In this document: piece after piece, positions 1,159 through 23,576 of the stretch
How positions within the stretch are numbered: the stretch's first letter is position 1
Layout: each line of letters starts with the position of its first letter
Source: Lepidodermella squamata
Taxonomy: Eukaryota > Animalia > Gastrotricha
NCBI GenBank assembly: GCA_047495785.1
Contig: JBLDXI010000042.1
Coordinates: forward strand, 2,232,001-2,296,000
Length of the DNA: 64,000 bases
Direction: 5' to 3'
Program-made: the position numbers and the translations under genes
The notes under the pieces: generated by a model
The model's input: the letters and a program-made list of their open reading frames with translations, nothing else
The model's database searches: none
What the model was told of the DNA's origin: nothing

Positions 1159-1187
1159 GTTCAAAAAATGAAAATATATAAAAAATA

Positions 1188-1520: not shown

Positions 1521-1631
1521 ACTCCGTAAAAAATGTTAGTAATAATTTTCAGCTCATCAGTAGCTCAACAATTTTTCCCAAGCTCAAGTTCTGTGAAGTA
1601 GTTTTATGATAACTTGGCAATTTTTTTACAG

Positions 1632-2540: not shown

Positions 2541-2900
2541 TTAATCACTAATATTTATGTCATCAACATATTCAACCTTCTGAAATTTTTTCATCTTTTT
2601 GTCGTTTTTCGATTTTTTATCGCTGCTTTTCTGCTTCATGCGGCGCAGTTTTGCTCGCGTTTTTTCATCGCCGAATTCGCCCAGGCTTTGCTCGACGATT
2701 CTGTAGACGCCGGGGTTTTTCATCTGCCGAATGATTGAGCCCATGCTCCACACATTGGCTTGCTGGCTCTTCTCCTGGCTGTTCGCAATGTCGTCGGCTA
2801 TGTCATTGAGCGAACCAAACGCAAGAATGCCGTCTAAAATTGCATAAAAAATCGCCGTGTGGATCAGGTAATAAATCGTTGCGGTTTGAAGAGGTTTCAT
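2541..2900 (-). CDS. Small secreted protein, family A paralog 1 (119 aa, intronless)
   Basis: Hydrophobic signal peptide ending ILA, then FGSLNDIADDIA. Basic C-terminal half ends KMKKFQKVEYVDDINI. Homologous to three neighbours. Confidence 0.85.
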   Translation of the reverse strand: MKPLQTATIYYLIHTAIFYAILDGILAFGSLNDIADDIANSQEKSQQANVWSMGSIIRQMKNPGVYRIVEQSLGEFGDEKTRAKLRRMKQKSSDKKSKNDKKMKKFQKVEYVDDINISD

Positions 2901-3651
2901 TTTTTAATTTACAAAAAATCTAGAAAAATGCAGAGAACTATAAATTATTTTTTAGTGGAACACGCTTTGAAATAGAAAATGTTGAATGTACTAATAAATC
3001 GGCAACTAGACTCAGTGGGGGCCCTGAAAAGTCGACAATAAATGTATCTCTCATATTATGTCTCAGACCACCCGGCGTCACCGTTCTAATAGAGTGTTTT
3101 CAAATTGTTGTCGCAAGACAAAAAGTGCACTTATTGCTACTACATCCGCGTCCACTCCTGTTTTTTATTAAAGTGCGCTGATAAAATAATATGCACGAAT
3201 ATGCGTTACATGATGAAAAATTGAAATACGACACCTTAATTAATTTGACATTTGAATTCATAATCGCTGCCCTGGTTCATTGCAGTCGCTTATTATTCAT
3301 GATTTTTTCATTAATCATGCGATATACCTACCTAAAATGAGCAGCTATTTTTAGAACGACTCTCTGTCCCAAAATAAGGGGATTTGATAGGGTGAGATGC
3401 AAAAATCCCTGCGAAATCCTCCAGTCTACTTCCAGGTCAAAGATTTATTACGAGGAAGCTCGGCAGAAACAAAATCACCAACAAAAGCTGTCCTTAGCAA
3501 GGTTGTTTCCGAATGCGTGTGTTTCAACCTCCGCGTGGTGTGTCCGGTTTTGTTTTTAATAAAATTGCTCTGACATGTCGGCATTCTCCTGTTTACAGAA
3601 TGTTCAGTACGTTTGTATTAAGGTTTGCTCATTTCGTCGGATATTTCCAAG

Positions 3652-3812
3652 AGGCTATCCCTTTCGAACACGGACACTCCCATGGCTTTTTTGAGCAAAC
3701 CGCCATAATTGCATTCGATAAAAAGTCCAGGAGTAACGGGTCATAAATGAACAATATTCGTACAGTTGTGCAGAAAAGCTCATGGAGTGTGCGTTTTCAA
3801 ACGGGATAGCCT
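3652..3812. repeat. Short inverted-repeat (MITE-like) element
   Basis: aggctatccctttcgaacacggacactccatgg pairs imperfectly with catggagtgtgcgttttcaaacgggatagcct. Confidence 0.55.
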
Positions 3813-4488
3813 GGTAGAAAACTTCCAGAATATCGTTCAGCGGAACGAAATCTGCCTGGAACCAAGTTTTGGATAAGCCAGAGGTCGCTTTGAAGGAAAT
3901 TCATGAAATGTATGGATCCTGTAGTGAAGAATGCGTCTTATACAGAATTTTACGTTTAATTTGAATATGATTTATTTAAAAATTATGCCGATCAATCATA
4001 AAATCTTTGAAAGTATATCAAAGTGGTTTTAGGCCTATTGAAAAGTTCAACATATCGTTCCGCTACAGTCATATTTGGTTCTGCTAAAAGTAAGACCCGA
4101 AAACTTCCACAAGCTTAATACAAAAACCTTCATAAAAATATATTGAATAAGAGATGGAAGGATGTGAAATGTGAAATAAATTTGATATACGAATAAAATT
4201 GCACTACGACCTCGATTCAAAAAAGTTCATAAGAGATTTTGTGACCTTTTCATTACGACTGCCGTTAAATTTGATATCCTCTTAGATTTTCGAAGGAAAA
4301 ATGTGGAGTTCCAGCTCTGATCGGGAATTATCGATTCTTCTTCGATTTTCGAAAAAATAATAAGATGGTTCGAGACTAAGTATTCAACCCACCATATGCT
4401 CAAATTTATAATAACTCTGTTATAATTTTAGTCTATTTTATTTCCATTTTTTATTTGTTACTAAACGCAAGTTTCTAAGCTAATTTTT

Positions 4489-4881
4489 TTAGGCTGCAAT
4501 GTTTATATCGGCGACGTATTCGACGCGTTCGAATTTTCGCAATTTGCGTCTTCGAGGTGCCGCGCTTTCGATAGATTTTCCAAGCCCCAACTGCTGGCGA
4601 AGTTTCCTTAGCGCCAGTTGCCGACCAAGCTTGAGCTTACTGCCGAGGGCCTGCTGTACGAGTTTGTAGATTTTGAGATCAGAAGCTAGATGCAGGTTTC
4701 GGATAGCGTCCCAATTGTAGCGAACTGGGACAACTGGTTCCTCGCTGTCGCTTGGAGTATGATCCTCTTGGTTCTTACTCAAGGCGATGTCATCCGAAAT
4801 ATCGTTGAGAGCTCCGAAAGACAAGACAGAGCTTGCGAAGAAGCAAGTCGAGATAATTAAAGGCAAGTAAATCATCATCAT
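4489..4881 (-). CDS. Small secreted protein, family A paralog 2 (130 aa)
   Basis: Signal peptide ...ASSVLS, then FGALNDISDDIA, W...D.KIYKLVQQAL and RRRKLRKFERVEYVADINIAA. Confidence 0.88.
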   Translation of the reverse strand: MMMIYLPLIISTCFFASSVLSFGALNDISDDIALSKNQEDHTPSDSEEPVVPVRYNWDAIRNLHLASDLKIYKLVQQALGSKLKLGRQLALRKLRQQLGLGKSIESAAPRRRKLRKFERVEYVADINIAA

Positions 4882-5363
4882 CTTTAAAACGCGCAGATAA
4901 ATACTGACAAATTGTGGCTTAGTTTCACCGGTTTTAAACTGTCAGAAAATGCGCATCTGCTTAGTGTATATCCGACCCTTGAATTACTAGATTATAGAAT
5001 TTCGAATCATCGAGGCTTCACATAGATGCGCTGAAAGGACACCACGCCAACATGATGAAGAGATGAGTGTGAAATTCGTGCTCTATATTTGTCTGGTACA
5101 GCACTGATAATTTGTCTACATCTAGGATTCGTAACACGAGTTTGGGAAATCGGAGCATAAAACATCGTCTGGAGGATATGACTAGATCGAATGCGGAGAA
5201 TCCAGGCATATAGACGAATTGTATAGAATGACCTTTTCCTGAAACCCGATCACTATTGCCGTGATTCATCTTTACATCGATGAAATTCGCCAAACCCAAT
5301 ATTATTAACGGTCATTTTGTTTTATTTGTTACTAAAAAAACGAAAGTTTCCAGGCTTAATTGT

Positions 5364-5738
5364 TTAGGCTGCAATGTTTATATCGGCGACGTGTTCGACG
5401 CGTTCGAACTTTCGCAATTTTGGTTGACGAGTTGTTGTGCTTTTGTTAGGTTTTCCAAGCTGGCGAAGTTTCCTTCGAGCTATCAGTCGACTACGCTTGA
5501 GCTTGTTGCCGAGGGCATGCTTCACAAGTTTGTAGACTTTGGGATCAGATGCTAGATTCAGGTTTCGGATAGCGTCCCATTTGTATCGAACTGGGATAGC
5601 AACTGGCTCCTCTGAAGTAAGTTCTTCTTGGTCCTTACCCAAGGCGAGGTCTTCTAAAATATCGCTGAGAGATCCGAATGACAAGACCGAGCTTGCGAAG
5701 AAGCAAGTCGAGAATAGAATCGGCAAGTAAAGGTTCAT
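5364..5738 (-). CDS. Small secreted protein, family A paralog 3 (124 aa)
   Basis: Close duplicate of paralog 2: FGSLSDILEDLA...KLRKFERVEHVADINIAA. Confidence 0.88.
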   Translation of the reverse strand: MNLYLPILFSTCFFASSVLSFGSLSDILEDLALGKDQEELTSEEPVAIPVRYKWDAIRNLNLASDPKVYKLVKHALGNKLKRSRLIARRKLRQLGKPNKSTTTRQPKLRKFERVEHVADINIAA

Positions 5739-7305
5739 CTTTAAAAGGCAAATAGTACAGCCTCAAGTTTCACTCGGTTATAAATGGTCAGAAAATGATT
5801 GGATCATGATGATCTGCTCAGCCTATTTATTACCGACGCTTGGGTTGCTAAATGTTAATTCAATTAATTCAATTATAAAATTTCAAGTCACCGAAGCTAT
5901 TACCCTAATAATTCGGCTGAAAGGACACAAAGTCAACATGCAGAGATGAGTATATATGAAATCCGTGATCTATATTTGCCTGGTACAGCACTAATCAGTA
6001 GTCTCCATCTACGTTTCGTAAAACGAGAGACGCATAGTCTGGAGGAGATGTCTATTAGATCAAATCCGGAGAACCCAGACATATAGCCGACCTGCAAGTG
6101 CCATCAGAGTTGTGTAAACCGACAGGTAGAAAAGATCACCGGTATGGGTCTGGTCTCATTCAGGTCTCGTTGGAGCAAAAGTGACCGGGTTAACAGGAAA
6201 AGGACATCAAATCATATAATGCGATGATGTGTCAGTGTAATTTAAATTGCGATTCTTTGCTTTAACGATCGTCTAAATTATTCGCATTAAAATACCTAGT
6301 ACTTGATTTGTTGTCATTTACACGTCCTTTGAAAATCAGGTGAAAACATGTCGGTTTGAGTTGGGTCTATCAAGAAATTCCAATGCTGGAAAAAAACTAG
6401 ATGTTTCCATGTCTGAGTGCCAAATCGTTTTAGTGTCTTTGAAAAAGGCGGACTCAAGCTTGTTTTCGCCAGTTTTAAGGTGGTTGTTGGGAAGGGAAAC
6501 TTCTTTTTTCCTTGAGCAAAATTCCTAATTTCACCCAGTTGATCGCCGATAATTGGTAAAAATCGAAACTGGTCCCTGTCGTAAATCCTTAGAATTGGAA
6601 ATGAATCATAGGTAGCAATAGAATAAGCTGGCAAACAAAGTAGGTCACATGTAATTATGAGCAATTTTAAACTTGGCGCCATTTTCTGTCAGATAAAGCT
6701 GACGTTATCGACTGCTTCGAACGGCTTCGAAAATAACACTCATTTCAAGTGAATGACCTGCTTATTTCATTTCTTCAAAGATCCTTATGAAGTGCAATCA
6801 TAAAAGATGATCCAAGTTCCAAGTCGTTCTTGCAAAGATTTATCATGATCTTCAATCCTAGAGGAGACCTTAGCAGAACTCTACATCATATTAACCAGGG
6901 CATTAAATCCCTATTGGGGAAGTGGAGTTTATGAGACGAGTTTCGCTGGATATCCCTAAACCACGCTATGACTTGGGCCCACTTGCAACGAATTTGACCC
7001 AATTTTTAGAAAAACTCCAGCTCAGTCCGCCGATTTGCGACAGGGGCCTATATAAGATCGCCGCCTATAAAAAAGCCTAAAAGAATTCACATGGCTCGAA
7101 GCTGAAAGTGGCCGAAACCGAAAAATATACCACAGTGCGAACTTTTCGACGACTTGAACAAGTCCGAAGTTCAAATTAAATTAAACAATTCAGAAAAGTC
7201 ACGAATTATCCATAAAAATTAAGCCTGCGTAAAATTTTATTAATCCTTTTGAAAAATGTCCGATCCAGCGTAATATTTTCCAATCAATGGGATAAGGTTA
7301 AAGAT

Positions 7306-7686
7306 TCAGTGGGGCAAATTTATTTCTTCCACCATTTGAACGTATTCGAACTTTCGCAACTTTCGCCGCCGGTTACCATGCGGTGAAGTGGCGTTGAGTC
7401 GCTGGCGCAGTTCTTTCAAAGCTTTCTGCCGCCGCTGCTTTATCAACGTCTGCTGGTCGGCTAGCGAGTTCTGAACCATTTTGTAAACTCGCCGGTCTGA
7501 TGCGAGCAGATTCTTGAGCGATTCCCAATTCTCACGATACGGCACCGCCCCGTCGATGTCGTCCGTCGCGTCCGCAGAATTTCGGCTAGCTGCAATGTCG
7601 TCTGAAATGTCGTTCAAAGAACCGAAAGCCGAAACTGCGTAAACGAAAGCAAACGTAGTAAGGAAAAGTTGGAAAATCAAATGCAT
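7306..7686 (-). CDS. Small secreted protein, family A paralog 4 (126 aa)
   Basis: Signal peptide ...YAVSA, then FGSLNDISDDIA, W...LASDRRVYKMVQNSL and RRRKLRKFEYVQMVEEINL. Confidence 0.88.
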   Translation of the reverse strand: MHLIFQLFLTTFAFVYAVSAFGSLNDISDDIAASRNSADATDDIDGAVPYRENWESLKNLLASDRRVYKMVQNSLADQQTLIKQRRQKALKELRQRLNATSPHGNRRRKLRKFEYVQMVEEINLPH

Positions 7687-10266
7687 TTTTAACGAGACTG
7701 AGGTGATCTAACGTATATGACAGTCAAGTTCGTTACTCCTCAGACATAAACAGCTTAGATAATTAGATGTTAATGGTTCCTCGGCTAAAAATAATGCAGT
7801 GGAACATTATAATTAACTGTTCTCTTCCGTTTTTTCCGGGTTTTTTTCGCCGAACTTAGTAGAGCACATGACATGAATGACGAACATGGAGAGGATGCGT
7901 GGGTTTAGGTATTTAGGCAGCAGACAGGTTATCGATAAAATGGATCACGATCGCGTCGAGTTGTTAATCGCTATCGTCGTCGCTTTTTCAGGGATTTGTC
8001 GGAAGTGGCCGATCGGTAAACATCAGCTTTGATGAATGACTGAAAATGTCCAATTTTATCATTCTCACCTTGAATATCGGCAATTTTTCGGCTTTTTTTA
8101 GAACGAAAACTTTGAAGTTCCGACATTCTTATAAAATAATTCAGCCGTAAAGTGGAACAAAATTTGATGAAAATGGGTCCTGACGATTTGCCAGTCAGAC
8201 AAAGATATCTCGCAGGTTTAAACGAGTGTCACTCGAAAACGAAAATAATCACTTCTGTCTTGGGTTTCACTCAACTTCCGAACTTGTCATCCAGGCGTTT
8301 TTGCTCTTCACTTCATTTTAATTCAATTTCACGTCCTGCACTTCAATGATTACATGATTTTGATCTTCTTGAACATCTGTGCTTGCAAAAATCGGCTGTG
8401 ACCCATTTTGAGATTTGAGAAAATGTTCCTATATTAAAATGTCTTTCTACAGTGCAAGCATGAACGTGTTGCTGAGAAAATGGGCTTCAACGTTTACGGG
8501 TGAAAATTTAATTTCGAAAAATACGCGCTTAAAATTTCGCTTTTTATTGCATCAATTACCTAATAATTCGTCGCGCACTATTTTCTTATGCGCAATCAAA
8601 ATTTTTGAGGTAATCTGAGGTGAGAAATCTTGCTAGATATTCAAAAATTGGGATAGAATCAAGCTAGGCCTTTTCAGCGACACTTCGGGGTCTCCCGTCT
8701 ATGCGGGAGCTTCCTAGAGGTCTGAATTTTGAAAATTCCAATTCCTCAAGAAAAACTGGGAAGAACATCAAGGAATCCAATTATCGTCCCTCTTCGAGTC
8801 AACACACTTTCTGTTATTTGCTGTAAAATACAGAAAGTACGCCAAGCCTCACTTTTCACTTGTTAATAACGGTCATATTGAACTTTCGAGCATAAATTTC
8901 TGCTGAAAAAACTGGCAGTGCGGTTGATCGTGGAAATCAGCTGAGCGGTGAAAGATCCTAGAGGTTTAACCACGCATGAGTGGCCTCGATATATAAAGCC
9001 ACCTACAGTCAAAAAACCTGTGAGCGCAGTATTATACAGTATTACGTGCGATACGCTTTTACTAAAGGACATTTTTCCAATTTTGGTGTTATTACTGCGA
9101 AATTCAATAAACGACAGTTTTTTCTGAGTGACGAAAATACGCTCAAATTCGTATAATGATTATCTCATTTCGGAGGATGATTGATAGAAATAGCGACAAA
9201 ATCCAAATTAATTTTTACGGAATCGATCATCGTTGAAGATCTTCAAGGCTTGGAAAGTCAATCGATTTCAGGAAATCCTGCGTATTCTATAGGAAGTAAC
9301 AAGTTTACCTCGCCGATGAAATATGAAAACAACTTGTTTTGCCATTAGCAGATTGTCCCATATCAATTTGAAAAATAGATTTACCTACTTGTTTTTTGAC
9401 ACGCCTTCTTTGATGCTTTTTCGAGGGGGTTGGAGTAAACATCTTTATAATCATATATGTATCTTCATTTTAATCTGAGACTCAAAAATATTATTCCCAC
9501 ATGCCCATAGGTAAATTTTGTCAAGGAGAAACTGCGGACTTTTTATTTCAATTTTTTATGTTATTTTCACAGGGGTATGACCCTTTCCCGTCACCAAAAA
9601 GTGGCTCAAGATTGTGAGCGTGTGGGAATAGGATTACTCTATAGCTTTCCATGGATAAATATAAATACCCCCGATCTGGAACCTCGATTCATTCGGTCAT
9701 TCGTTCAGGGGAAGTGTGTCTGTATTCCGTGCCATCCAAGATTGCTCAATTCTCTATGGCTAGCCATAGAGAATCCCCATATTTCCCCCACACTGAGTTA
9801 TGAGATGCATAATTTTTTATTTTTTATTCAACAAGCCATGTTACTGCTTTACTTACTAACGGGTCATTTGTATAAATTATCACGTTTTTTTGTAGCTAAC
9901 TTGGATGACGCGGTGTTGTAAACGTTTCTGATTAGCAGGACAGCGAACTCCCTCGCAAACTCAAGGCGGTCGAACTTCAATTATATTCTGCTGGCACGAC
10001 GCACGTGGCTAATAACCTCTTGGCTAATTTTTTCTCTTCGCACCTCTTCCGCACGATTTGACGATGGTTCGATCACGCATGTTTTTTTTTTCTTAAAATT
10101 TAGCAACTCACCCTGAGAGCTATAAGCGGAATATCCGCCTTCCTTCCTTCCGCCACATTGTGTTCGTGACCTCGGAAATTAATTGCCGCTTTTTACAGGA
10201 ACCATACTATTTTATCATCCTTTAATTCGACACTAGGTTTTTTAAAGCAATTTATACCCACAAAAA

Positions 10267-10512
10267 ATGAGCTGTTCCATTGTTAAGCTGTGCGCCCTGT
10301 TCGTTGTTGTCGCCTCGCTAGCCATGTTTTCATCGCCGGAGGTTGGTGCCTACCAGCTGATGGCTGATCTGAAGGATGATCTCAGCCTGAACCAACCGGC
10401 AGCTGCGTCATCTCGAGCGCGACTGTTGATGCTGAAAAGTGGACGAGCCAACGCGCGTTTTCATCAACCCGGCAACCAGGCGCATCGCCTACAACAACGA
10501 AGCAGGACCTAA
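10267..10512 (+). CDS. Small secreted protein, family B paralog 1 (81 aa, short form)
   Basis: Signal peptide ending VGA, then YQLMADLKDDL. aaaaATG start context, ctataag at about 10120 and a downstream aataaa. Confidence 0.7.
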   Translation: MSCSIVKLCALFVVVASLAMFSSPEVGAYQLMADLKDDLSLNQPAAASSRARLLMLKSGRANARFHQPGNQAHRLQQRSRT

Positions 10513-12201
10513 ATTGTCGGCTATGATGGGCGCTACGCGTCACTAGAATGTCAATTGAACACATTTTCGGTTATTTTTTTTACCTGAAGCTACCATTTAT
10601 TATTAATATGTAAATAACACTTTGACCGGTGACACGGTGGCAGACGGCAGATAATAAATAATCATAGCCATGCTTTTGTTTTGAATACTGGATATAGCGA
10701 TGAAGATTTCCCAACTTGAGTTTGTTCAGTCTTATTCTATTTCCGTTTACGCCGAGCGACGAGCCTGGTTTTCCACGCGTGATAACTTATCAATCACCTG
10801 ATTTACTAAAATTCGCCGATTTTTACATAAAAATTCAGTTTTCTCATCAGTTTATTTGGCACGAAAACATTCTTTGGCACCCATGCTACAACCTCAATTT
10901 TTCCGCTTGATTATATCGATCGGCATTTTACCAGCTGATGGGATAATGAGCGTTGATATCTCGGAATTCTGGGACATCATGCGACAAATAAGTTTTCATC
11001 CACAGATAGTTTTCTCAACAGCAGGTTTCGAACGTCACAGGCTTCGAAATCTGTTGCGGGAACATGGTTTCATGGGGTAACTTGTCCGATTTTCCCGAGG
11101 AGAATGTTCGCTAAAATGAGCTCCTGGTGCAAAGCTGACCGATGAAAATTTGGGTATGAGAGTAGAACAGGTACCGCCTAGCCTCAGAAACCCGTTTTTT
11201 TGGCGAAGTTACCCCACACCACGGTATGAAGCTTTCAGTAAAAAGAGGATAGTTTGACGACAGGGTTAATACACTCAAAGATAAACCATCCAAATAACTT
11301 GAAGCAAGCATCAGTAATCAAGAGGAACTTGTTGCTTTCAAATCCCAAAACTCTTGTTAGATATTCAAAGATCCGTACTGCCCGAAAAGTTAGTCAGCCT
11401 TAAATAAAATTCGATCTCAAGTAAAAGACGGGGTCCGAAGGTCATTCAAAATAATAAAGGTCAGGTCGCCTACGCGTTTTATGTAGCATCATTTCCTGAT
11501 TTATCGATAAATTTCGAAATGGCTTATACAGGAATTTGAATTTTACTACGTCATCCTCATCATCGCCTTCTTTTCGGGTTAAAAACCCGAATAGAATATT
11601 CCCTTATACTGCTCTATAAATTGTGCTAAATGCAAAAAATGGCATTTTCAGCGCAGGTGTCGCTGTGTAAAACACACCATATTTCACAGAATTTGATCTT
11701 CGAGATCTCGAAATAAAGAGCCTTCAGCTGTGTCCGGGGGTAACTTAGCCCTTCAATGTTCTCCGATAGCCTCTTCAAAACCAATTATCCTTACCGGACA
11801 CGTTTTGGCAATTATCCTTAAAAAAATATATTATTCACCGATAATATTGTTCTAGATTAATGCGATAGTGGTTTTAATCAACTGAATTACCGCGCCATAT
11901 TATGTGTGCCATTCAATATTTTCATTGACGTTTTCATTTCATGTTTTCCTCGATAATTTTTTTCGCAGAGCTGGAATTATTTCGTATGAAGCGAGATAAG
12001 CCATCGGCAAAGCCGCCACGCTTCAATTAAATCGCACTTGAGTGAGATATTAGTCATATTCCCGCATTTTTTCCCGATTTCTCGCGATAATAAGGCTTAA
12101 ACATAGTGACATAGTGACGGATTGAGCGTATATAACTAGGTCGGGACCTCGCAATTTTTTCATAATTTTTTTGCAAGATTTTCTGTGACAAATTATTCAG
12201 C

Positions 12202-12606
12202 ATGGCTAGTTCTGGAAAATTCTGCCGGCTTCTGATTTTCATCAATATTTCGCTGCTGGGTGGCCTCTTCAAAGTATCACATGGATACATGATGCTAGCC
12301 GACATGAATGAAGACGCTTTGGAAAGTCCTAATGCTGATGATGAGCAACACGAGCAGACGATTCACGATTCATCTTTTTACCCGAATCAGATGGCTCGAA
12401 CCGGCAGCATCATGGCAAGCAATGGCATGCAAATGTACAATTCTTGGCGGATGAGTAAAGGCACCAATCAGCCCATGACGTCAGCAGTCCTCGACTACAG
12501 CTCGGGTTCGAGATCGAAAGCCAAGCCGCGCTTTAACATTAAGATTACCCGCAATGAAAGCTACAAATTACTGCCCAGAGTGGCTGCTATTAAACCTAGC
12601 TTATAA
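12202..12606 (+). CDS. Small secreted protein, family B paralog 2 (134 aa)
   Basis: Signal peptide ending SHG, then YMMLADMNED. C-terminal PRFNIKITRNESYKLL. TATATAA at about 12128. Confidence 0.82.
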   Translation: MASSGKFCRLLIFINISLLGGLFKVSHGYMMLADMNEDALESPNADDEQHEQTIHDSSFYPNQMARTGSIMASNGMQMYNSWRMSKGTNQPMTSAVLDYSSGSRSKAKPRFNIKITRNESYKLLPRVAAIKPSL

Positions 12607-12874
12607 TTAATGTGTTTGATAATTTTTAGAGTACCAATTGCCACCATATTTCTTTAGCTAATGGCTTCAGAAGTAAACAGAAATGCACCTATAAATTCCA
12701 TTTTTTGTTTAATGTTTCCGATTCTTTGACACTGATTTTTAAAATCGATACCAGAAATCGATATCGGCTTTGTAAGCTGAATTCCAAGTCGTAAACTGAT
12801 CGCTGATATCGAATCGGAGGGCGCGATCCGTGATCTGTGGATTATGCTAGGATTTATAGTAAAACATATTATAT

Positions 12875-13510
12875 GGAGTGAATATTCGTAACTTTAACGA
12901 GCTTTCGTACTTCGAAGGGGTTCCAGCAGCGGATACCTAATTAAAAAATTTTTGTTCAAAATATTCTACGCATAATAAATATGGCTAGTCTGACGTATAT
13001 GTTCCAAGAGACTCATCAGAGAGCTTAGTTAAGAAAGTTAACTGGCCACGCAATCCAGCATGGATCCCCATTAACTATTCGAAACCTTCTGACTAATTTG
13101 GAACTCAAACCAATGAACGTTTTTTTACGGTGGATGAGCCAATTGAAGAATGCAGCCTGGCCTCGAATCGCCCGAGGATTTCCAGCTGAGAGATACGCAA
13201 GGATGAGGAACCCGTAGAAATGATAAATATGGCTACGTATGAAATTAAGTAAGGCTCATACTTCACTTGGTTGGAAAAAATTATCTGGCTTTATCATATT
13301 TTCTGTGGAAAAAAGCTTATTTTTAGTTTGATTTTATTAACAACTGAATCTTGAGTTTCCCGACCTTTCTGAAAGGTTCCACTTCCTTCTCCACCTGAAA
13401 ATTCATCCACAGGAATCGCTTTTCCAACCAGGTGACCATGTTGAACATTTAAAATTTTACGTAGAATATTTTGAGCAATTAATTTTCAATTGTCCGCCGC
13501 TGCTGGAATC
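12875..13510. mobile_element. MITE/foldback family 1 copy interrupted by an insertion
   Basis: Shares arms with 1188-1520 (ttccagcagcggata...aaaatattctacg; aaggctcatacttca; cccgacctttctgaaaggttccact is the reverse complement of the 1360-1390 stretch). Insert 12988-13222 lies between ataaatatggcta direct repeats. Confidence 0.7.
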
Positions 13511-13762
13511 CGAACTGTCAAGAACGCGTGTGAAAATCATGCGAAAATCAAGTGCTGAAGCCTCAAAATTAGCACTACATTAGCTAAACAGCATTACAAA
13601 TCTTCTATTTATTGGTTCCACTCGGCACTCCCATCAGCAATTAGTATTTTAATTGAACTTTCATGACTATTTTGTGTGCCGAAACTTTCCGTCTAAAAAA
13701 TCAAATAGACTATTCGTAAAATGTTCAAAATACGCAAAAGGATATTCCTTAATGCTGCCTGA

Positions 13763-13967
13763 AGGCATGTGACGTAGATGTTGACGTACGCAGGACTACC
13801 TCGATTTTTCGCCTGAAAACATCGCGAAAAAGTGGCTCATTATCATGTTCGATTTATCATTGTTTTGATGCGCAGAGGTCGGCCTCGAATTTTGAATATT
13901 TGTTTTTCCAAGCTCAGGCAAAAAATCGGAGTAGTCCTGCGTCCGTCAAGATCTACATCACATGCCT
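13763..13967. mobile_element. MITE-like element with about 50-bp terminal inverted repeats
   Basis: aggcatgtgacgtagatgttgacgtacgcaggactac...cctga pairs with tcagg...gtagtcctgcgtccgtcaagatctacatcacatgcct. Confidence 0.75.
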
Positions 13968-14541
13968 AAAATAAGTTCACGACTCTACATTCATGCCGAG
14001 AAAAATTCGTCATCATTTTCAATTTTCGGCGGTGATTTTGAACCCTTGAAATCAAGAGTTCGTCCAGAATCCCGCCCTCTGTTATTTGTAGTTTTTTCGA
14101 AGTTCCCATCAGTGCTTTATGAGCATAAGCTAGCGAAAAAATGACCTATTTCCTCAATTCATAGCTTCTTGACTACTCTAATCAATTCTAATAGACCGGC
14201 TATAAGTCATGGAGCAGTTGCGTCTCAGGACGAAAATTGGCTCTTAGACTTATTTATTTAATCATCAATGATTTCCTGTTTTCATGCGAAACGCGTTTTG
14301 AAACTGATCGGCGGCTTTATATTTTTGTGGTAAATATATTTAAAAGCCTAAACCAATCAAACTTAGTGTATTTTTATATAAATGTACCTGAGACGAAATG
14401 TGGGTGGTTTGTTATCCGTCCGTTCGATTTTTCTAATAATTTCCGTGATAGATTTTCGTATATATATTTCAAGCTTTCAAGTTCGAATTTTCTAGGATTT
14501 TTGGGTCAAGAGCTAATTCTCGGTTTTTCACAACTTTAGAA

Positions 14542-14937
14542 ATGAAGATTCAATTTTTATTGGTAATATTTTGTCTCGCAGCTATCCGATCAAGTTCAAG
14601 CTACATGATTTTAGCTGATATCAACGACGCTGCGATGCCACCGGATAGCGGCGAATCGCTGAGTCAAACCGATGACGTTGAAGAGCCGCTTAATGTGGCA
14701 CTCCGAGCTGAGCCTAATGCTAGGGCTTCAAAATTATTCGCCAGGCTACCGACGACAACGCCGAAGTCTGAATTATCGCTGAAGAAAATGTTGGAGACGG
14801 TGAGACATTTTCGACGCACGCATTCATCTGCGACAGCCAGTGGTATTCGAAGGACCCAGCCACGCTTCAACATTACCGTTACTCATCAAGAAAATTACCG
14901 ATTACTTGCCAGAGGAGTGTCGAACAAAAATAAGTGA
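14542..14937 (+). CDS. Small secreted protein, family B paralog 3 (131 aa)
   Basis: Signal peptide MKIQFLLVIFCLAAIRSSSS, then YMILADINDA. C-terminal PRFNITVTHQENYRLL matches B2. TATATATA at about 14459. Confidence 0.85.
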   Translation: MKIQFLLVIFCLAAIRSSSSYMILADINDAAMPPDSGESLSQTDDVEEPLNVALRAEPNARASKLFARLPTTTPKSELSLKKMLETVRHFRRTHSSATASGIRRTQPRFNITVTHQENYRLLARGVSNKNK

Positions 14938-16847
14938 AAAAAATAGCGAGATTCGATTAAAATTAAGAATTATGTTTCAATGTGATATTTCGAAATTAAT
15001 TTCGCTAAATTAGCTGCGATAAAATCGAAGCAATGAGCCGGTATCATTATTGTAACTTCAATAAAAATGCGCTTTGCAAAATATTTTTTTATCTTTATTA
15101 CCGTACACATTACATTTTGCAGTTGCTGGATCGGTGGCTCAATTTGGTACTTGGACGCCTTTTTCTGTCTTGCGGCTGGTAGCGCCAGCTCTCTACCGGT
15201 ATCAAATAAAAAGTATTTTTAAACTTGGCGATTTTTCAATGAGTACTGTAACGTGGTATTTTGGGGGGGGGCCGTGTTTATACGTCTGTGTTTTTTCTAG
15301 GTGAATGAAGTATTCAATTGTAATTTAAAAGACGATTAATATCTCGATTTGGTAATCTTTGACTCTCGATAATGTCAAATATCACTGAAATTGACAAAAA
15401 AATACGCACATGATTAAATTGTATGCGCTCTTTCATTAGCGCTTCTTCCCACCCGTGGAAATCAATTGAAAAATTTAGGCGGCTGACTGGTCTTCGTTGA
15501 CTGGTTAATTTTCAAGTTTCAGTGTCATTTGAAAGAAGAATCGCGAGGCTTTTATTCTCCCTGGAGGAATAGAGATGCCCTTTATCATCGCGCACTATCG
15601 TTGGACAAAGGCTGAGTGGCGCATGCCCGCATAGTTCAGCTCACGGGTCTATGAACGCGCGCACTTTTTTGTTCAAAAATTGTTTTCAAAACTTGAAAAA
15701 ATTGTTCAAACGTGCTGTTCTTTCCTCCTCTCGCGCGCGCGAGTGAGGCAGGCGACCGCCCTTGCTCAGCTGAGTAAAATATTCGGTATTAGTAACAAGC
15801 TTAGACCAGTGTTGAAGAAAAAATCATTTTCAAAGTCCGAATGTTCGACCCCGTCCACAATATGAAGGCAGCGTGAAATTAAATTTTCCCTTGATTAAAA
15901 TCTCAAATTTAGATATAAAATTTGATTGAAAGCTAATGAAAACGTGGCTCTCGGTTTTTAAATTCGACATTTCCACTGGCAAAGTGAATCTAACACAAAA
16001 TTAGGATTGTAACTAGGGTATTAATCCGAAGGCCTGTCACGAGTATTATTTATGAGACTCTCTGGACTCGTGCAACAACTCGTCAAATGGTGACAAATTT
16101 TTCGACGATTTTTCTACCCTCCGGCGCACGCGATTTTAATCGGTTAATCCGGCCCATTTGACACTCTTTATCCGGGTACACACGTCCAACGCAGGCTATT
16201 ACTCCGCAATTCCGGAATTGCGTGTGCGACCAATCGTAGCCTAATCAAGCGCGATTGCTGACGACCAAGCACCTGCCAACACTTCTCGTCATCCCGGATA
16301 ATTACCCGGACGAAGAGTCAGGTCGCTGATCGTTAATGTAGCGGGCGGATGATCCGGCTAAAGGCGGCTTATGATAGCGATTGTGACCTAATATCACGGT
16401 TACAGCATCAATGATCGCCGGATCAGAGCGAGTGCAATAAATTCAAAGTGACATCACCATTTCGCAAAGTAGCGCAACGAGTAATCGAAAATCAAGAGCC
16501 GCTATAAATCAAATCATACGTCTCCAGACAGAAAGCGGCGCCTTGGCGGCGGAAATGCTGCCGGCTATTACTCAATAAGACGCGGCGCAATTAGTGCGCG
16601 CAATTGAGCCGAAAATGACCCTGTCTACAGACGCAATTAGCGCGTCATTATGACGGTTACTTTTTACGCAGGAACCACGACGGCTGAAAACCGTGAATAC
16701 ACCAACAAAAACGAAGAGTTGTCATTCCGAATGTTTATTCGATCATTCAATTCAATAAATTTTTCAATAAAACATGTGAACAAGTGAAATATTTACAGAA
16801 CAATAATATACAATAAATCGCAAATAAATTCGAATATTTACAACAAA

Positions 16848-17408
16848 TCACGCCAGCAGAAGGCGGCGAGAAGGGAACGGTCGGTCGAAAGCGCGAGCCG
16901 AAGACGAACAAGTCGCGACGGGAGATCGTTCGATCGGTGACGAAGAGCCGGAAGAAACGCCGGACGAAGAATTCCTCGAGTAGCAAGCCGGCTTGCTGGT
17001 AACAGCCAAGCTGGTCGACTTGACAGTGATAGACTTGGCGACTCTGCAACGAACAGCGTGAACCGGTGTCGGGTTGCACGGGCGTTCGATCGTCTTGACA
17101 GGCGAAACGGCCGAAGCACGAGTCGGCGTCGGGTTGCGAGGACGAGCCGGTGCCCAAGACGGGGTGAAATCACGGCTGCGCTTCGAAGCATCGAATCGGC
17201 TACGACGGCTCGAGCGGTTAACAGCCAGCGGCTCAACGGCAACGACCGGTGCCATGAAAATGGCAAGATCGCAGTCGTCGTCGTCGTACGCCGGCTCGTT
17301 GTCGAAGGACAGATCGTCGGAAACGAACGAGGCGTTGAGAACGTCGTCGTTGTCGTAGGCGAACATAGCGCGGGTCGGAGTCGGGTTACGAGGACGGAAA
17401 GCAGCCAT
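16848..17408 (-). CDS. Orphan intronless disordered protein (186 aa) with three RP[RC]NPTP repeats
   Basis: GC-rich codon-like block with an acATGG start at 17408, a TATA/CCAAT promoter immediately upstream, AATAAA downstream (tttatt at about 16735) and an internal peptide repeat. Confidence 0.75.
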   Translation of the reverse strand: MAAFRPRNPTPTRAMFAYDNDDVLNASFVSDDLSFDNEPAYDDDDCDLAIFMAPVVAVEPLAVNRSSRRSRFDASKRSRDFTPSWAPARPRNPTPTRASAVSPVKTIERPCNPTPVHAVRCRVAKSITVKSTSLAVTSKPACYSRNSSSGVSSGSSSPIERSPVATCSSSARAFDRPFPSRRLLLA

Positions 17409-17469
17409 GTCGATGATGAAGTTAACAATCGTTATAATGAAAATCAAATGCGAATGTAAATGCGAGTTA

Positions 17470-17575
17470 GCGAGTGATGCCTAACGAGGCGTTGTGCGCG
17501 CGCTTATATAGAGCGCAACCACGGTCGCGCGCTGTGATTGGCTGGAGCGTGCGCACGCCGTGGCCTGGCCAATGA
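17470..17575 (-). promoter_or_regulatory. Core promoter: TATA box, Inr-like site and two CCAAT boxes
   Basis: TATATAAG on - at 17503-17510, an ATCACT Inr-like site about 30 nt downstream, and CCAAT at 17537-17541 (-) and 17569-17573 (+) in a CG-rich patch. Confidence 0.75.
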
Positions 17576-18924
17576 GCGCGTGTGCGCGAGGCCTCGCAGC
17601 TGCTAAGCTCCACCCCCGCGCACAGTTAGACATTTTCGCGACCTGATTAGCACCTTGTAAGATTATCGCTTATCTCTAGCGAGTCAACGAATGACAAACT
17701 AAAAATTTCGTGCGGGCAAACTATTTAGCTGAATATGAAAAAATAATCCACCTTAATACGAAAGATATGAATGTCCTCCAACGTTATCGCCCAAGTTTTC
17801 GGTTCAACGTTACTACTGAAGTAAAATAAGATACAAGACCATAAACGTCAATCAAATTGTATACATTTTCACCAGCTGTGAATGTGAACCAGTCTTGAAA
17901 TGTAGTGCCGTTTTTCTGTCGGAAATACCTCAAATGTAATTACCAGTCGAAAAGTAAAGTGTCATTTCATAGAGATCATTTGATCGGTCGAACAGTGTAG
18001 TCACTCTTTAAATTGTATCAGCTTCCGGTTGATATTTGTATCTGCTTTTCTTGCGATATTTTCCATTTTATGTTGCTTTATTTCATGTTTTTTTACTCAT
18101 TCTATTTTTCTGCGCTGGATCCAAATTGTTTCCAAACAGTTTATTCAAGTGTATCAAATAACAGGTTCCATATCACGCTTCCACGGTGACTCGAAATTAA
18201 CAGGTGCGTGTGAGTTGTCGCGTGTTCCTGCTGGTGGTCGGCGGCGTAAAGTGCGCGGCGCTGTCAAAAACTTAAGGCGGAGCGGCACACCGCGCAAGAA
18301 ACGCTCACCTCCCCCCGCCACCTGCGCGCACCGTCTCGGTCGCGCCCTTTGCCCAGGTACGCACCGCCGGTTACACGCGCCGCGCTTGTAATTAACTTTC
18401 TTGCAACGCACACTCGGCTGGCGATTGCCATCAGTTATATCACCGATTTATTGCCTTTTAATTAAGGTGGATGGTTTTCTATCAAAAAACATTGTCCACG
18501 TTGTTGGCTGGTCAATGAAGCGTAGCTGTGTAACAATAATCAATATGAGAATCAGTGTCATCGTGAAGAGTGGACATCACCTGACAACACGGTTCCGCGT
18601 CCGCAGTTTTAACCGGACGAACGCGCGCGCACGCTCATCACACCGGGACGCTGAGTGACAATAATAAAATCGTACTGAGTGCGCGCGCGCATCATTCGAA
18701 CAATAACGCGCGCGTCAATGCGCACATGGATGAGTTTAACACCCCCACTCAAGAGCTTGGCTCAGCTCAAGAGAGCGTACAACAATCAGATAGTTATAAG
18801 CTAACTTTATCACGGTGATCTTTGCGAATTCTACAACTTTTAGTTTATTGCTAAGAAAATATTCGGTTTTTTCTCCAGGAATATTATACAGAATAGAAAA
18901 TATGTCCTAAAATAAGTTCGGGAA

Positions 18925-19233
18925 TTATTTCCTTCCAGGGAAAGATCGCTTCTGATAGAAAGAATCGAAGTGTTGAGAGCGGCCGCTCAGAAAACCGGGC
19001 AAAATAAGTCCATACTGGCCGAGCAGGTACATCTTATTTAGCGTGATTTCATCGAATTGACTCAAGAATTTTGCCTCGTCATCGGTGAGTGGTCGCTTGA
19101 GATTAGCTAGGTTGTAAACTGTCTGGCTGTCATCGATCCACTGGTTGGTAAATTCGTCGCAAATCGAAACATTCACCAGGGTGACCAATAGCAAAGCGAA
19201 GGCGGCGATATTGAGAGCGGCGCAACTTTTCAT
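18925..19233 (-). CDS. Secreted prepropeptide-like protein (102 aa)
   Basis: Signal peptide, two KR sites, a GR and a terminal GRK amidation-type signal. CTATAAAA about 70 nt upstream. Confidence 0.78.
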   Translation of the reverse strand: MKSCAALNIAAFALLLVTLVNVSICDEFTNQWIDDSQTVYNLANLKRPLTDDEAKFLSQFDEITLNKMYLLGQYGLILPGFLSGRSQHFDSFYQKRSFPGRK

Positions 19234-20202
19234 TATTTTTTAACGAAAAACTAGTAATTTCAAAGGAAAATTAAGTATCCTCCTAGTCTTGGATTACACC
19301 TGTTTTATAGCGTTTTTAGCGGGCACTTAATTAAGTTAATGCGGGCAGTCGTCTGCATCGAATTGGATTACAACAATTTGATGTTTAATTAAACAAAATT
19401 GAATTTCTGCAAAACACTATCGCATTTCATAATTTTTCTGGAGAGGCGTTACTTGTCTTTTTGGCACTATCATTCACTTAAAGTGAATTGATAGCAATCA
19501 TATAGACATCAGATTAGGTGAATGTGTAGGTTTACGTCATGGCGGAAGTCACATCGTTAAAATCAACGTTCAAGGTACAGTAAAATGTGTCGAAACCGGA
19601 GTTGTCTCAACCGGACGTCTAATGCGGATGGATTTCTTTCCAGCCGTGGCATAGGGGAGGTGGTACCATCACTGAGAAGGTTCAAGAGCTGTTAAAAGCC
19701 TTGATTTCCGTCAATATGGAGCTTCAAGTTCAAGTTTCAAGAGAGCTGAAATAGGGCTTAAATATAGGAAAAATATTTAATAATAATCCCCTAAATCCCC
19801 TAAAACTCCAATTGTTAATCATTTTTTCGGAAAAGCTAAGTTCACAATTTCAAGAAACCCAGGCAAAAAGGCAAAACATGACCAAAAAGGTTCGAAATTA
19901 GAGTTTTCCCGATTTCAAATCTTAAAAGCGGAAACCATTAAAACAACTACAATCGTAAAAAGCATCGAATCAATTTATATCTCTGGCTTAAATCAGGGCT
20001 TCAAAGGTGTGAAAAATTGTTTGGGCTAAAATTGTGACAGTCCTACTTTTTGAGTGCCTCGTGTCTCAAGAGTCGATTGCCGATGTGCCGAGAATAATTC
20101 AATAATATAACACTCCTAGGAGTGAATAGAAAAATCAGAATAATACATTTATTTTTGTAAATTGGAAAATTGATATATTCGATTTTATTATTATTATTAC
20201 TA

Positions 20203-23200
20203 TCAGTATCTGTCGTAAGTCTGACGTCGAGGCAGTGTATCTTCGCTGAATCTAATCCGCTTCGCACTAGGCGATGTAGGTTCGCCGCTATCAGACCTTA
20301 CATTTAGGTACAACATTGAAATGTCACTTGAGGTACTTTCCCGTATACTCGGGTGCATTGTCACGCTTTTCTTCGGCTGCGGCTGCTGAATTACGGCCAT
20401 TATACGGCCAACATTTGTGCCGCAATCAACAGAAGCGCGGCGGTTGTAGTTGGTTATTTTCAAAATGCTAGCTAAAGCAGCAGATCGGCTGTGATTCGGC
20501 GCGCTGAAGTTGCTACTGGTCGACGATGACAGAAAGCATAGGCCGGAATCTAAGGTTTCGTCACGTATCGGTGGCGCTGTGAAGGTAATAGGCGAGGCGT
20601 ACTCCGACTCGACTCTTGCTTCTAAAAATGGACCACAAGGTGACTCGAACTCATTCTCCGATTCAATTAGCAGCGACGGAGCGGGCGGTGGGAAAATAGC
20701 CGAACTTTCCGGTGTGAAAATTCTGATGTCATCAAAGTCGCGTTTTCGCCATATTTGAATACCAGGCCTCGGTAGCGCCTCCATTAAGGTGGACATCGCC
20801 GGCGAGGGTTCGTCGGTTCTGACAAAGTCTGGCCAGTATTTCTCGGGCACGAGTTTTCGCGTGAAAAATGCAAAAATATCCAAGTTGATCTTTATTAAAC
20901 AAAATTATAAAAAGATTAAATTAAATTAAATAATTAATTAAAATAAATAAATAAATTAATAAATATAAAATTGATTAAAATAGAGTGAGGGGAAGTCATT
21001 TTTGTCTGTTTCCAGACGGATTCGGAATTTCTCTCGATTTTTTACGAATTCAAGTTCAAGGCTGAATTGTGAAACTCCCAAGGCTGTTGCCTAAGAAAGG
21101 AGCTTCCTAATTTAAGATTTTCTAGATGTCCGAGCTTCAAAATGCCAAAAATCAGGAAAATAATAGAAAATTCTCTAAATTTCCAGCATCTAAATTCAGG
21201 ATCCGCCGTGCCCCTCTTTAGTTCAAATGTGAAATTTTTGAACTGATATTCTAGCTTCAAAAAGCTTTGAAAGTTTCCCCTGACTGCAATAGGGAAAATG
21301 TCATTTTTTCACCTGTTTGAACTCGGTCCTAAACTGTTTTCCAAGCATCGTGTAGAAAAAGAAGTGGCTCGAATGATTGAGGTAGGTCATGAAACTTTCG
21401 ACAGCTCGAATGAAGAACAGATACGCCTTTCCTTCGTTGCTTTTGTTCAGCTGAGGTTCGAAGTAAGGTCCAGATACGAGTAGGACAAAGGTCGGCGTGC
21501 CTAGCACGAGGAAGGCGGCTGATGATATGTAGAGCATGTTGGTTGTAGTCCGAAGCGTCGCCATATTTTCGACCCCGCTGCCTCTTCGAATACGGCCGAT
21601 GCCTCGGTGGATTCGATCGAGAAAAGATTTGCGTTCGAACAACTTTTTCGTTATAACAATATTCCCGGCTAGCACGATGCCGAAGGGTCCGACGATGTAG
21701 AAAGCTGCGATGAGCCAGCGGTGGAAGTTAATGGCGAAATATTCGGCGTTTTTGTCGATAAATTTGCATTGGTAACGAACGGGCGCGTTCAACAAAGACG
21801 GCTGAGTCATATTTACGGCCACGCTTCGCCGAACCAGAGACGAACTTCTAGTTACACCGGGCTCATCGGGAATCCAAGAAGGCGGCGTTGTTGAAGCTCG
21901 GGATTTTAGCGTCGTCACAGGTAACAAGCCGAAACCACTAGGAGTAGTCTTTAGAGCTAGCGAAGATCTTCAAAAATAATATAATTTTTTCTATTATTCG
22001 AGCGGAAAAACAGGACTTACAAGCTCGCAGCTTCGAGGCCAACACCGACGAGGACGAAGGAATTCAATGAACCGAAAAATAGCCATATCGAAGCAATGAC
22101 TATGAAAGCCACCTTAAATTTACAGTGAGATGTCAAATGTTCAAAATTATCAAAATTTCCTTACACGTCTTCGGCAAAACTTTTGAGCGTGAAAAGGGAA
22201 AACAACCGCTATTACGCGGTCAATGGTAATGGCAGCTAAAATCTGAAATAGAATATAATTTTTTTTTATAAAAATTAGCCAGAAAAATGGTATTGTTCAA
22301 GTTGAGGTTCCGCGGCCCTGTACGAATTTGTTGGGACATGTAGGTTCCTCTCTAATCTTTGATATCAAATGATCACTTGTGAAAATGGTAACTTGAAATC
22401 GATTCAAGCTGAAGCTGGGGCTGCTCAAAATTAGCCTAAACCCTAAACTAGCTTTTCAAAGATCTGGAAGATCAAACCTTTGTGAATGCAAGGCACTTTG
22501 TTCTTGGAAAATGGGCCTAATAAATATTTGGAACTAGTAAATTCGGTTTACTAGAAGCACTGAATTTCTAGCACTAATCTTTCCAGATTTTTCGATTGTG
22601 ATCAAGATCCCGAGATTTTTTCATGTTACCTGCCTTTCGCCCACAGAAACCTTTCTTTGTTAGCTTTCAAGCCTGCCAATATCGGGAAAATCGCTGATTT
22701 GTATAATCGATAACAGAAATCGATATCAGCTCTGCAAAACTAAACTATAGCTGACTGCTGATAGCGCAAAAATACGCTTACTAGTGAGATCTATTGGTTA
22801 GGAATGTTTGTAAAAAGTTGATGGTCCAACGTGGGCTTATACTCGAAAACACCATATTTGCTGGAACCCTGAATTGAGGTTGTGAACTTCGCAAATCAAG
22901 GACGCTTTCTTACCCAGTGAGAAGCATCGAGGCAGGTGTAGTGAGCGAATCTATGAACTTTGCACATGAAATTGGAAGTTTCGCGAACGTCAAAACGCCA
23001 CACGTTCTGCATCCATTTACGCGTGACGCCGATGAACAAGTTAACCGTATCGTGGACGCATAACATTTTAAGGTAGACAGCGCTGGAACCTTGCGCGGAA
23101 ATAATAGGCCGACACAGTATGACAAACGTGAGCACGTTTCCTAGCAGGCCGATGATCAACATCGGCGGGTAGAGATATCTCTCCATCCATATGCTGATTT

Positions 23201-23576
23201 GATACACGAGGTAGGACGATATCGGATCGTCGGTAACGCGATTCGTCCGCCGAGCGAGCTTCGAAATCGCAGCCAACTCCCCGGTTAAATACCGGTTGAG
23301 TTCCGCTGGCTGCGCGACGTTTAACAGCCGCCATTCAGCTCGACTGAGATGCTCATCCGCAACTTCTCGAAGCTGGTAAGTTGAATTAACCGCCATTAAT
23401 TTATTCATGGCATCTGAAGCAGCCTCGGTTTGGTAATCATCGTCGTAGCCGTAGTAGTAACTTGAAAAATTATCGGCCGGCTTGTTCGAGCCAGGCATGT
23501 CACGCTCGACTTGGTCGGCGAAAGATCGCCAAAATATGAATAATTGAGCGGTTATATTGAGAACGTCTTCGTGCAT
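20203..23576 (-). CDS. Rhodopsin-class peptide GPCR 1 (FMRFamide/sex-peptide-receptor-like orphan group). Exons about 23576-22914, 22242-22165, 22111-22020, 21956-21313, 20889-20203
   Basis: TM1 YLYPPMLIIGLLGNVL, TM2 YLKMLCVHD, ECL1 Cys MCKVHRF, TM3 W|ILAAITIDRVIAVVFP, TM6 FLVLGTP, TM7 YLNHSSHFFFYTMLGKQFR. The ORF at 20203-20883 has no ATG at its start and splices in phase (FKQ|INLDIF) as the C-terminal tail. Confidence 0.88.
22551..22883. mobile_element. MITE family 2 copy (GPCR1 intron)
   Basis: Core atcgg.aaaatc.c.gatttgta.aatcgata...aatcgatatcagctctgc...tagcgcaaaa and end gctggaaccc, shared with the 31.8 kb and 57.2 kb copies and a partial copy at about 12741-12812. Confidence 0.7.

Follow-up and report, generated by a model that had tools for sequence, protein, structure and literature searches.

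A family of small predicted secretory proteins in Lepidodermella squamata that share an acidic module at the putative mature N-terminus

Seven small genes near the start of the window

The window analyzed here is a stretch of 64,000 nucleotides from the gastrotrich Lepidodermella squamata (contig JBLDXI010000042.1, positions 2,232,001 to 2,296,000; the contig is called C42 below). Near its start lie seven small open reading frames (ORFs), each predicted to encode a secretory protein in which a leader is followed directly by a ten-residue motif. An earlier note, made from the letters of the window, had described them, and the ORF listing of the window returned all seven with exactly the coordinates, strands and ten-residue strings given there. 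Four lie on the minus strand (family A) and three on the plus strand (family B); the two groups are head-to-head with a 2.6-kb spacer between them.

2541-2900, minus strand: A1, 119 amino acids, 27-residue leader, motif FGSLNDIADD
4489-4881, minus strand: A2, 130 amino acids, 21-residue leader, motif FGALNDISDD
5364-5738, minus strand: A3, 124 amino acids, 20-residue leader, motif FGSLSDILED
7306-7686, minus strand: A4, 126 amino acids, 20-residue leader, motif FGSLNDISDD
10267-10512, plus strand: B1, 81 amino acids, 28-residue leader, motif YQLMADLKDD
12202-12606, plus strand: B2, 134 amino acids, 28-residue leader, motif YMMLADMNED
14542-14937, plus strand: B3, 131 amino acids, 20-residue leader, motif YMILADINDA

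In all seven genes the leader is hydrophobic, 20-28 residues long and directly followed by the motif. When the window genes are taken together with their duplicates on contig C12 (see below), position -1 is occupied by A, S or G and position -3 by a small or aliphatic residue (V, I or S) in all 14 copies. These residues fit the (-3,-1) rule, so that cleavage by signal peptidase just before the motif is predicted, the sites being placed by that rule and not by a trained predictor. The signal-like leader proposed in the earlier note is therefore upheld, as is the lack of cysteine, which is absent from the mature regions of all seven proteins. The note had also described a change from an acidic N-terminus to a basic C-terminus. 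This was found throughout at the C-terminal end, where the last 40 residues are net basic in every one of the seven, and in six of the seven at the N-terminal end, where the first 30 mature residues are net acidic except in B1 (net charge +1).

Most of the genes have a TATA-like element 45-85 nucleotides upstream of the ATG and an AATAAA signal 20-140 nucleotides after the stop codon (33 nucleotides past it in A2). Leader, N-terminal motif, C-terminal motif and stop share one ORF in every copy, which fits single-exon genes. Rfam and tandem-repeat scans of the cluster region gave no matches.

The A proteins align end to end, with 29-35% identity to A1, and their invariant residues fall in three clusters, namely the N-terminal motif (F, G, L, D, I, D, A), a W/Y-V-L helix in the center and the block K-x-x-K-F-x-x-V-x-x-V-x-x-I-N at the C-terminal end. 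A1, for example, ends in a basic stretch followed by the conserved C-terminal peptide. Common to the B proteins are Y-x-x-x-A-D at the N-terminal end and S-G ... R-F ... L-x-x-R towards the C-terminus. B1 is a short member in which the N- and C-terminal modules are kept and the middle is gone; both of its ends align with B2 and B3.

The genes are duplicated and under purifying selection

When the assembly (121 Mb in 151 contigs) was searched with a profile, a second copy of all seven genes was found on contig C12. By BLAST, these copies lie in a block of about 30 kb that is collinear with the window region but inverted (window -5290..24820 matching C12:39271..8773, negative positions lying before the window start), with a nucleotide identity of 80-96% and spacers rich in indels. 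Synonymous divergence (dS) ranges from 0.06 to 0.26 across the gene pairs, and this uneven divergence along the block suggests gene conversion. We read the block as a segmental duplication because it is internal to C12, is bordered there by unique flanks unlike those on C42, cuts at one end the last (C-terminal) exon of a G-protein-coupled receptor (GPCR) gene (window 24526-24820), and because the assembly has a single copy of the Erlin gene, which lies 25 kb further on in the window. The view that the C12 copy is a mere uncollapsed haplotype was rejected on these grounds. Whether duplication or haplotype, the block provides two independent copies of each gene for comparison.

The reading frame is kept in all seven pairs, and the ratio of nonsynonymous to synonymous divergence (dN/dS) lies between 0.08 and 0.47 per pair. 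The C12 copy of A1 (C12:31377-31724) is 92% identical, with a dN/dS of 0.14; the corresponding values are 94% and 0.47, at a low dS of 0.06, for A2, 84% and 0.41, with in-frame indels, for A3, 98% and 0.08 for A4, 77% and 0.46 for B2, and 88% and 0.22 for B3. The copy of B1 is of equal length and has a dN/dS of 0.21. When the pairs were pooled (839 codons), dN was 0.053 and dS 0.173, giving an omega of 0.31; there were 100 nonsynonymous differences at 1946 sites and 88 synonymous differences at 571 sites (binomial p = 3e-13). The differences are distributed 59/34/95 over the three codon positions, and all ten length differences are multiples of three.

A search of sequencing runs with a 10-kb query, which could hide small transcripts, matched one DNA run and no RNA run. 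The lack of an RNA match is the one point in favor of an explanation of the ORFs as non-functional, as chance products or as exons of larger genes. The contigs of the DNA run cover genes and spacers evenly, which says nothing on expression. Such an explanation is nevertheless contradicted by the selection tests, which show purifying selection in all pairs, and by the conservation of the block, in which all eight genes (the seven and a further member, E1, described below) are intact in both copies with indels in frame. Moreover, each ORF has its own ATG, leader and stop, and most have the TATA-like and AATAAA elements. Because the ORFs are intact in both copies, have low dN/dS, vary in length only in frame and carry these elements, we conclude that they are real genes under purifying selection; chance ORFs are very unlikely, and the wider idea of non-functional ORFs or stray exons is hardly credible.

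Selection does not act evenly along the proteins. Amino-acid divergence between the block copies is 15.6% in the leader, 4.2% in the first 12 mature residues, 12.0% in the middle and 5.0% in the last 20 residues. Divergence in the middle is thus 2.5 times that at the two ends (Fisher p = 0.001), indicating that both ends are more constrained than the middle. This region-wise comparison bears out the variable middles that had been reported for the cluster.

The motif shared by A and B exceeds chance

With A and B aligned from the predicted cleavage site onward, the mean BLOSUM62 score over the first ten mature residues was 16.1, compared with 5.25 for the best of about 190 other A/B window pairings. 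In a column shuffle over the first 25 mature residues of B the observed score was reached in only one of 20,000 trials (p = 5e-5), which shows that the resemblance of the two families at the motif is not random. In agreement with this, hhalign aligned A with B at the motif only (P = 0.0098).

A motif profile search of the genome gave one weak extra match, 2.4 Mb off on C42. The back-translated DNA pattern [FY]xx[LMIF]xD[ILMF]x[DE]D gave 117 matches against 47 in the reversed control. Among about 40 of these that were inspected, only C42:4665087 and C42:4667465 lie directly behind a signal-like leader, no leader context being found for the rest of those inspected. A pattern restricted to the core gave 98 matches against 40 in the control and led to more genes with leader and motif on contigs C66, C1, C6 and C12. 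The following members lie on, or just before the window on, its own contig:

Window -5201..-4914, 4.9 kb before the window start: E1, an eighth gene, motif YQVLFDINDL
C42:4665024-4671585, plus strand: D1-D4, a second cluster of four genes, 2.4 Mb from the window
C42:4671049-4671585: D4, the last of these, with only 9 residues from the nearest ATG to the motif and a longer ORF opening 58 codons upstream

The true start of D4 is uncertain, and an intron in its 5' part is possible. E1, which like its neighbors is duplicated on C12, lies beyond the far side of a protease gene that precedes A1 (see below). Three more members are found on C12 just past the duplicated block, and further genes with leader and motif are located on C66 (two), C1, C6 and at two more C12 sites. 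The count of seven in the earlier note was therefore correct for the genes it listed but too low for the family, which extends to E1 and to loci elsewhere.

Defined by a leader, then hydrophobic-x-x-L-x-D-[ILMF]-[N/S]-[DE]-[DE], then a cysteine-free mature chain of 50-130 amino acids with an acidic N-terminal and a basic C-terminal half, the superfamily includes the seven window genes and 14 further distinct loci. In all, it comprises at least 29 ORFs at 21 distinct loci, 29 being a lower bound because not all pattern matches were inspected. There are at least five sub-families which, although they cannot be aligned elsewhere, have the one ten-residue module in common at the predicted new N-terminus.

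The D genes connect the two window families: hhalign gave P = 5e-7 for B against D (92% probability) and P = 9e-5 for A against D, both values being somewhat inflated as these alignments partly span the leader. The profile alignments support family D as a bridge that joins A and B in one superfamily, as the earlier note had proposed for the two window families.

Two ORF fragments 3.9 kb apart at C7:947453-951428 carry the motifs TSYLQDLNDD and TSHLQDMNDD with no in-frame leader. They could be decayed copies, or members whose leader is interrupted by an intron and encoded in part by an upstream exon.

Anatomy of the superfamily

Over the 21 loci the consensus of the motif is hydrophobic-x-x-L-x-D-[IL]-N-[DE]-[DE], within a conserved acidic module of 10-12 residues in which position 1 is usually F or Y. 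The frequencies by position are listed below; D2, when properly anchored, has V at position 1, and V is used here.

Position -1: S, A or G, 18 of 21 loci
Position 1: F (9) or Y (7), 16 of 21; V, I, M, L or A, 5 of 21
Position 4: L, 19 of 21 (20 with D2 properly anchored)
Position 6: D, 21 of 21
Position 7: I or L, 19 of 21
Position 8: N, 15 of 21
Position 9: D or E, 19 of 21
Position 10: D or E, 18 of 21
Positions 11-12: mostly hydrophobic

Residue -3 is V, S, I or A at 17 of the 21 loci. Leaders are 17-28 residues long with a hydrophobic core, D4 (9 residues) excepted, and their sequence is not conserved among members. Judged by rules of this kind, the hydrophobic core and the small-residue site are those of proteins predicted to enter the secretory pathway.

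The free aromatic N-terminus, which the earlier note took as the functional or sorting determinant, did not hold up as the defining feature: F or Y occurs at 16 of the 21 loci, and the core of the motif is instead L4, D6, I/L7, N8 and the acidic residues at 9-10. An aromatic residue at position 1 is a preference and not obligatory. The C-terminal module is as strongly conserved as the N-terminal one.

The hydrophobic residues of the motif (positions 1, 4, 7 and 11, with acidic residues in between) are spaced like those of an amphipathic helix. In the A motif the hydrophobic moment reaches 1.7-1.9 at 100 degrees but only 0.2-0.6 at 170 degrees. An AlphaFold2 model places a helix over the A motif at low confidence.

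All mature chains of the superfamily are cysteine-free. Their first 30 residues are net negative at 19 of the 21 loci and their last 40 residues net positive, likewise at 19. The layout consists of the leader, the acidic motif, a fast-evolving acidic Pro-rich spacer and a Lys/Arg-rich helical stretch. In A and B this is followed by a junction of basic and then aromatic residues (K-[LM]-[RK]-K-F in A, with K102, K105 and F106 invariant; [PA]-R-F in B, with R108 and F109 invariant) and by a conserved tail of 14-25 residues. Towards the end of many members, a basic pair precedes a stretch that is hydrophobic or beta-like and contains acidic residues, as in K-L-R-K-F-E-R-V-E-Y-V (A), I-R-R-I-V-I-T-D-A-F-D-V (C66), I-R-K-I-V-V-I-N-D (C12) and L-R-K-I-M-I-V (C6). 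Taken together, the sequences describe the members as small (about 80-150 amino acids), predicted single-exon, cysteine-free secretory proteins of a putative lineage-specific superfamily.

Search for relatives in other organisms

No known family was recognized by the earlier note, and the searches agree with it. Pfam gave only sub-threshold noise for all seven genes, including DUF3566 in the A1 leader (20.9 bits, where the cut-off is 22.2). Nothing was matched when A2 or the B alignment served as the query of a word-indexed homology search, and an exhaustive hmmsearch with an eight-sequence A profile against 1.84e9 representative proteins found no genuine relative. Its sole match, P0001 (758 amino acids, with twelve GLRKLRQEIL repeats), was rejected as a summed low-complexity score on a basic helix. 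A scan of metagenome contigs with the A profile gave 600 pattern matches, none of which was confirmed, and a full-text literature search for the motif strings returned only surnames. ESM Atlas feature searches with A2, D1 and B3 stayed below 0.9, the threshold for a reliable lead in this language-model search; the proteins returned were generic small secreted ones (RxLR, SPACA7, PRAP1, UTS2B) and not informative.

The reach of these negative results can be gauged from the Erlin gene of the window. Its product finds no self-match in the protein collections, which do not include the host animal's own proteins; the best identities are 80% to a metagenome contig in ENA and 78% to leech and fish, a level of conservation too high for Erlin to show where the animal belongs. 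The absence of relatives therefore holds among sampled organisms, and close kin of the host animal may simply be unsampled. Within that scope the superfamily appears to be lineage-specific, as the earlier note had suggested.

The metagenome contig (5734 bp) carries an Erlin gene and behind it an AAA_5 (VWA8-like) gene, an order also found at window 50535-56479, and its source is probably a relative of the host animal.

A tentative mechanism: secretory pro-proteins

Small secreted protein families that evolve fast are common in poorly sampled animals, so that an orphan family would be unsurprising on its own. What deserves attention is that sub-families which cannot otherwise be aligned keep one ten-residue module exactly at the predicted new N-terminus, and that selection holds both termini while the middle drifts. 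The shared module and the constrained termini point to a common handling step, which could be sorting, processing or docking. The families arose through tandem and segmental duplication, the terminal modules being held by selection as the middle drifted.

We tentatively favor a reading of the members as secretory pro-proteins, and consider it possible without holding it to be established. Signal peptidase would expose the acidic module at the new N-terminus, where it would serve as a common pro-region, a sorting tag or a docking tag and may, in addition, counterbalance the charge of the basic half at the C-terminus. The specific activity would then reside in the C-terminal part peculiar to each family, perhaps once the protein has been cut at the basic junction.

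The same polarity of charge would also fit a role in host defense of the antimicrobial type, in which a conserved acidic pro-piece would neutralize a cationic amphipathic helix, set free when the protein is secreted, much as in precursors of the frog skin peptide or cathelicidin type. A Lys/Arg/Leu-rich helix predicted at residues 69-97 of A2, the rapid tandem duplication and the variable middles are consistent with such precursors. However, B2 and several other members have no obvious cationic amphipathic helix, a conserved extreme C-terminus that is acidic or hydrophobic, as in family A, is not typical of such peptides, and no Pfam match to the frog skin active peptide family was obtained for the seven genes. 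We regard an antimicrobial function as improbable.

Several observations also weigh against the pro-protein reading. In several members cleavage could instead occur 2-4 residues further upstream. The junction in A has mostly Lys at P1 (RK or KK) and is a weak convertase site, the basic junction is not conserved in the alignment of the D family, and a conserved Gly-basic amidation signal is absent from the members. The AlphaFold2 models of A and B are poor (predicted local distance difference test scores, pLDDT, of 56 and 52; helices only), so that modeling lends no structural support. The sequencing-run search described above, with its single DNA run, belongs here too. Finally, the N-terminal cassette could equally be a receptor-binding epitope and not a pro-region.

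Neighboring genes and their bearing on function

The genes around the cluster bear on the last of these points and on a possible hormonal role. The window also holds ETS, rhodopsin-type GPCR, Tectonic, armadillo and VWA8 genes, which mark its host as a metazoan. The neighbors discussed here are:

1-2429, plus strand: 3' part of a serine protease-CCP-ankyrin gene, with a trypsin-like ORF at 120-440 and an ankyrin ORF at 1614-2429
16848-17447, minus strand: ORF of 199 amino acids with repeated R-P-R-N-P-T-P-T-R-A units
18925-19233, minus strand: ORF of 102 amino acids with a signal-like leader
21301-23585 and 24526-28074: rhodopsin-type GPCR genes

The protease-CCP-ankyrin gene sits inside the cluster, between E1 and A1, its link to the family being unproven. 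Directly behind the second cluster, D1-D4, lie four genes in tandem that encode secreted CCP(sushi)-ankyrin proteins (C42:4665024-4678461 for genes and cluster overall). It is unusual for ankyrin repeats to follow a signal peptide. A signature that precedes the repeats is common to the ankyrin parts (37% identity over 163 amino acids).

This arrangement raises the possibility that the members are unprocessed ligands or partner-binding proteins, whose N-terminal amphipathic acidic helix would be the binding epitope and whose candidate partners would be the neighboring extracellular ankyrin/CCP proteins. In agreement with it, the motif and the C-terminus are the most constrained parts of the proteins, one cluster encloses a protease-CCP-ankyrin gene and the other precedes four secreted CCP-ankyrin genes, and the pre-repeat signature is common to their ankyrin parts. 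On the other hand, a first look at the genome gave 3638 ankyrin-like candidate matches, so that adjacency may be due to chance; the C66 members have no ankyrin-type neighbor, and the proposed partnership draws on adjacency at two clusters. We consider this explanation rather unlikely, although less so than the remaining alternatives.

The ORF at 18925-19233 contains GR, KR and GRK sites (...GFLSGR / SQHFDSFYQKR / SFPGRK) and looks like a precursor of amidated peptides. It lies 2 kb from the two GPCR genes and within the block duplicated on C12.

Classical neuropeptide or hormone precursors that release short bioactive peptides must also be considered for the superfamily, whose members are small secreted precursors with basic sites and are accompanied in the window by the GPCR genes at 21.3-28.1 kb and by the peptide-precursor-like ORF at 18925-19233. 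Their own sequences do not fit this well: dibasic-flanked repeats and an amidation glycine are not conserved, and the N-terminal peptide has no consistent cleavage site behind it, K or R being found at position 15 only in A2-A4 and in none of the B proteins. We think it unlikely that the members are peptide precursors of this kind, and retain the pro-protein reading as the preferred, if tentative, one.

The ORF at 16848-17447 has no Pfam match and is kept in the other copy of the block (C12:16190-16756). The spacer between A and B contains dispersed repeats at 8300-8850 and 9400-9775, where the depth of DNA-run contigs is 10- to 30-fold that on either side. A repeat some 340 bp long, which has inverted copies and was seen at C12:40651-43195, is also frequent genome-wide.

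Wider meaning of the motif

Leader plus motif gives a simple sequence rule by which the repertoire can be listed in the host animal and its relatives. A further-reaching proposal is that L-x-D-[IL]-N-[DE]-[DE] acts in animals as a sorting or docking signal of a kind not described before. It would be analogous in function to RxLR, PEXEL or the nematocyst pro-parts and would route otherwise unrelated small proteins to one organelle, enzyme or receptor, one candidate partner being the neighboring CCP-ankyrin and protease-CCP-ankyrin proteins. We hold this proposal to be doubtful. If the motif is a sorting or receptor signal, it would constitute a new cell-biological tag in animals; if not, the superfamily would be one more lineage-specific secretory gene family.

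Comparison with known systems

The precursors of frog skin active peptides (PF03032) and the conotoxin superfamilies are likewise small secreted multigene families that expanded in tandem, with a conserved N-terminal secretory or acidic cassette and a fast-diverging, often basic C-terminal part. In the present superfamily, however, the signal peptide itself is not conserved; it is the first 10-12 mature residues that are kept, no clear KR site follows the acidic region, the extreme C-terminus is conserved and cysteines are lacking. PF03032 was not matched by any of the seven genes in hmmscan (E <= 1); the unrelated neighboring ORF at 18925-19233 gave a sub-threshold match of 13 bits.

Neuropeptide and prohormone precursors resemble the members in signal peptide, small size, basic residues before a conserved C-terminal peptide, clustering and the presence of GPCR genes nearby. 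They differ in that the members have no repeated peptide units and no conserved Gly-Lys/Arg amidation signals, and in that the junction is mostly RK/KK (A) or PR (B) and not KR or RR. No homology to described peptide families was found in Pfam or in the homology searches.

Cnidarian nematocyst toxins and minicollagens have a short acidic pro-part after the signal peptide, ending in Lys-Arg, ahead of unrelated cargo, and sorting to a secretory organelle has been proposed for it. The acidic module described here is similar in position and acidity, whereas its sequence is different and it has no known link to an organelle.

In oomycete RxLR-dEER and Plasmodium PEXEL proteins a signal peptide is followed by a short motif common to clustered, rapidly evolving and otherwise unrelated proteins, as in the present case. 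Here, however, the motif stands at the predicted cleavage site and not 20-40 residues downstream, and the host is an animal with no sign of parasitism. The nearest language-model features of A2 were RxLR clusters (score 0.85, below the 0.9 threshold); RxLR and PEXEL sequences are absent from the members, and PF16810 was not matched by the seven genes. Because the defining motifs and profiles are absent, the superfamily belongs neither to the cassette precursors nor to the RxLR and PEXEL repertoires; in its predicted layout it works like the former and resembles the latter.

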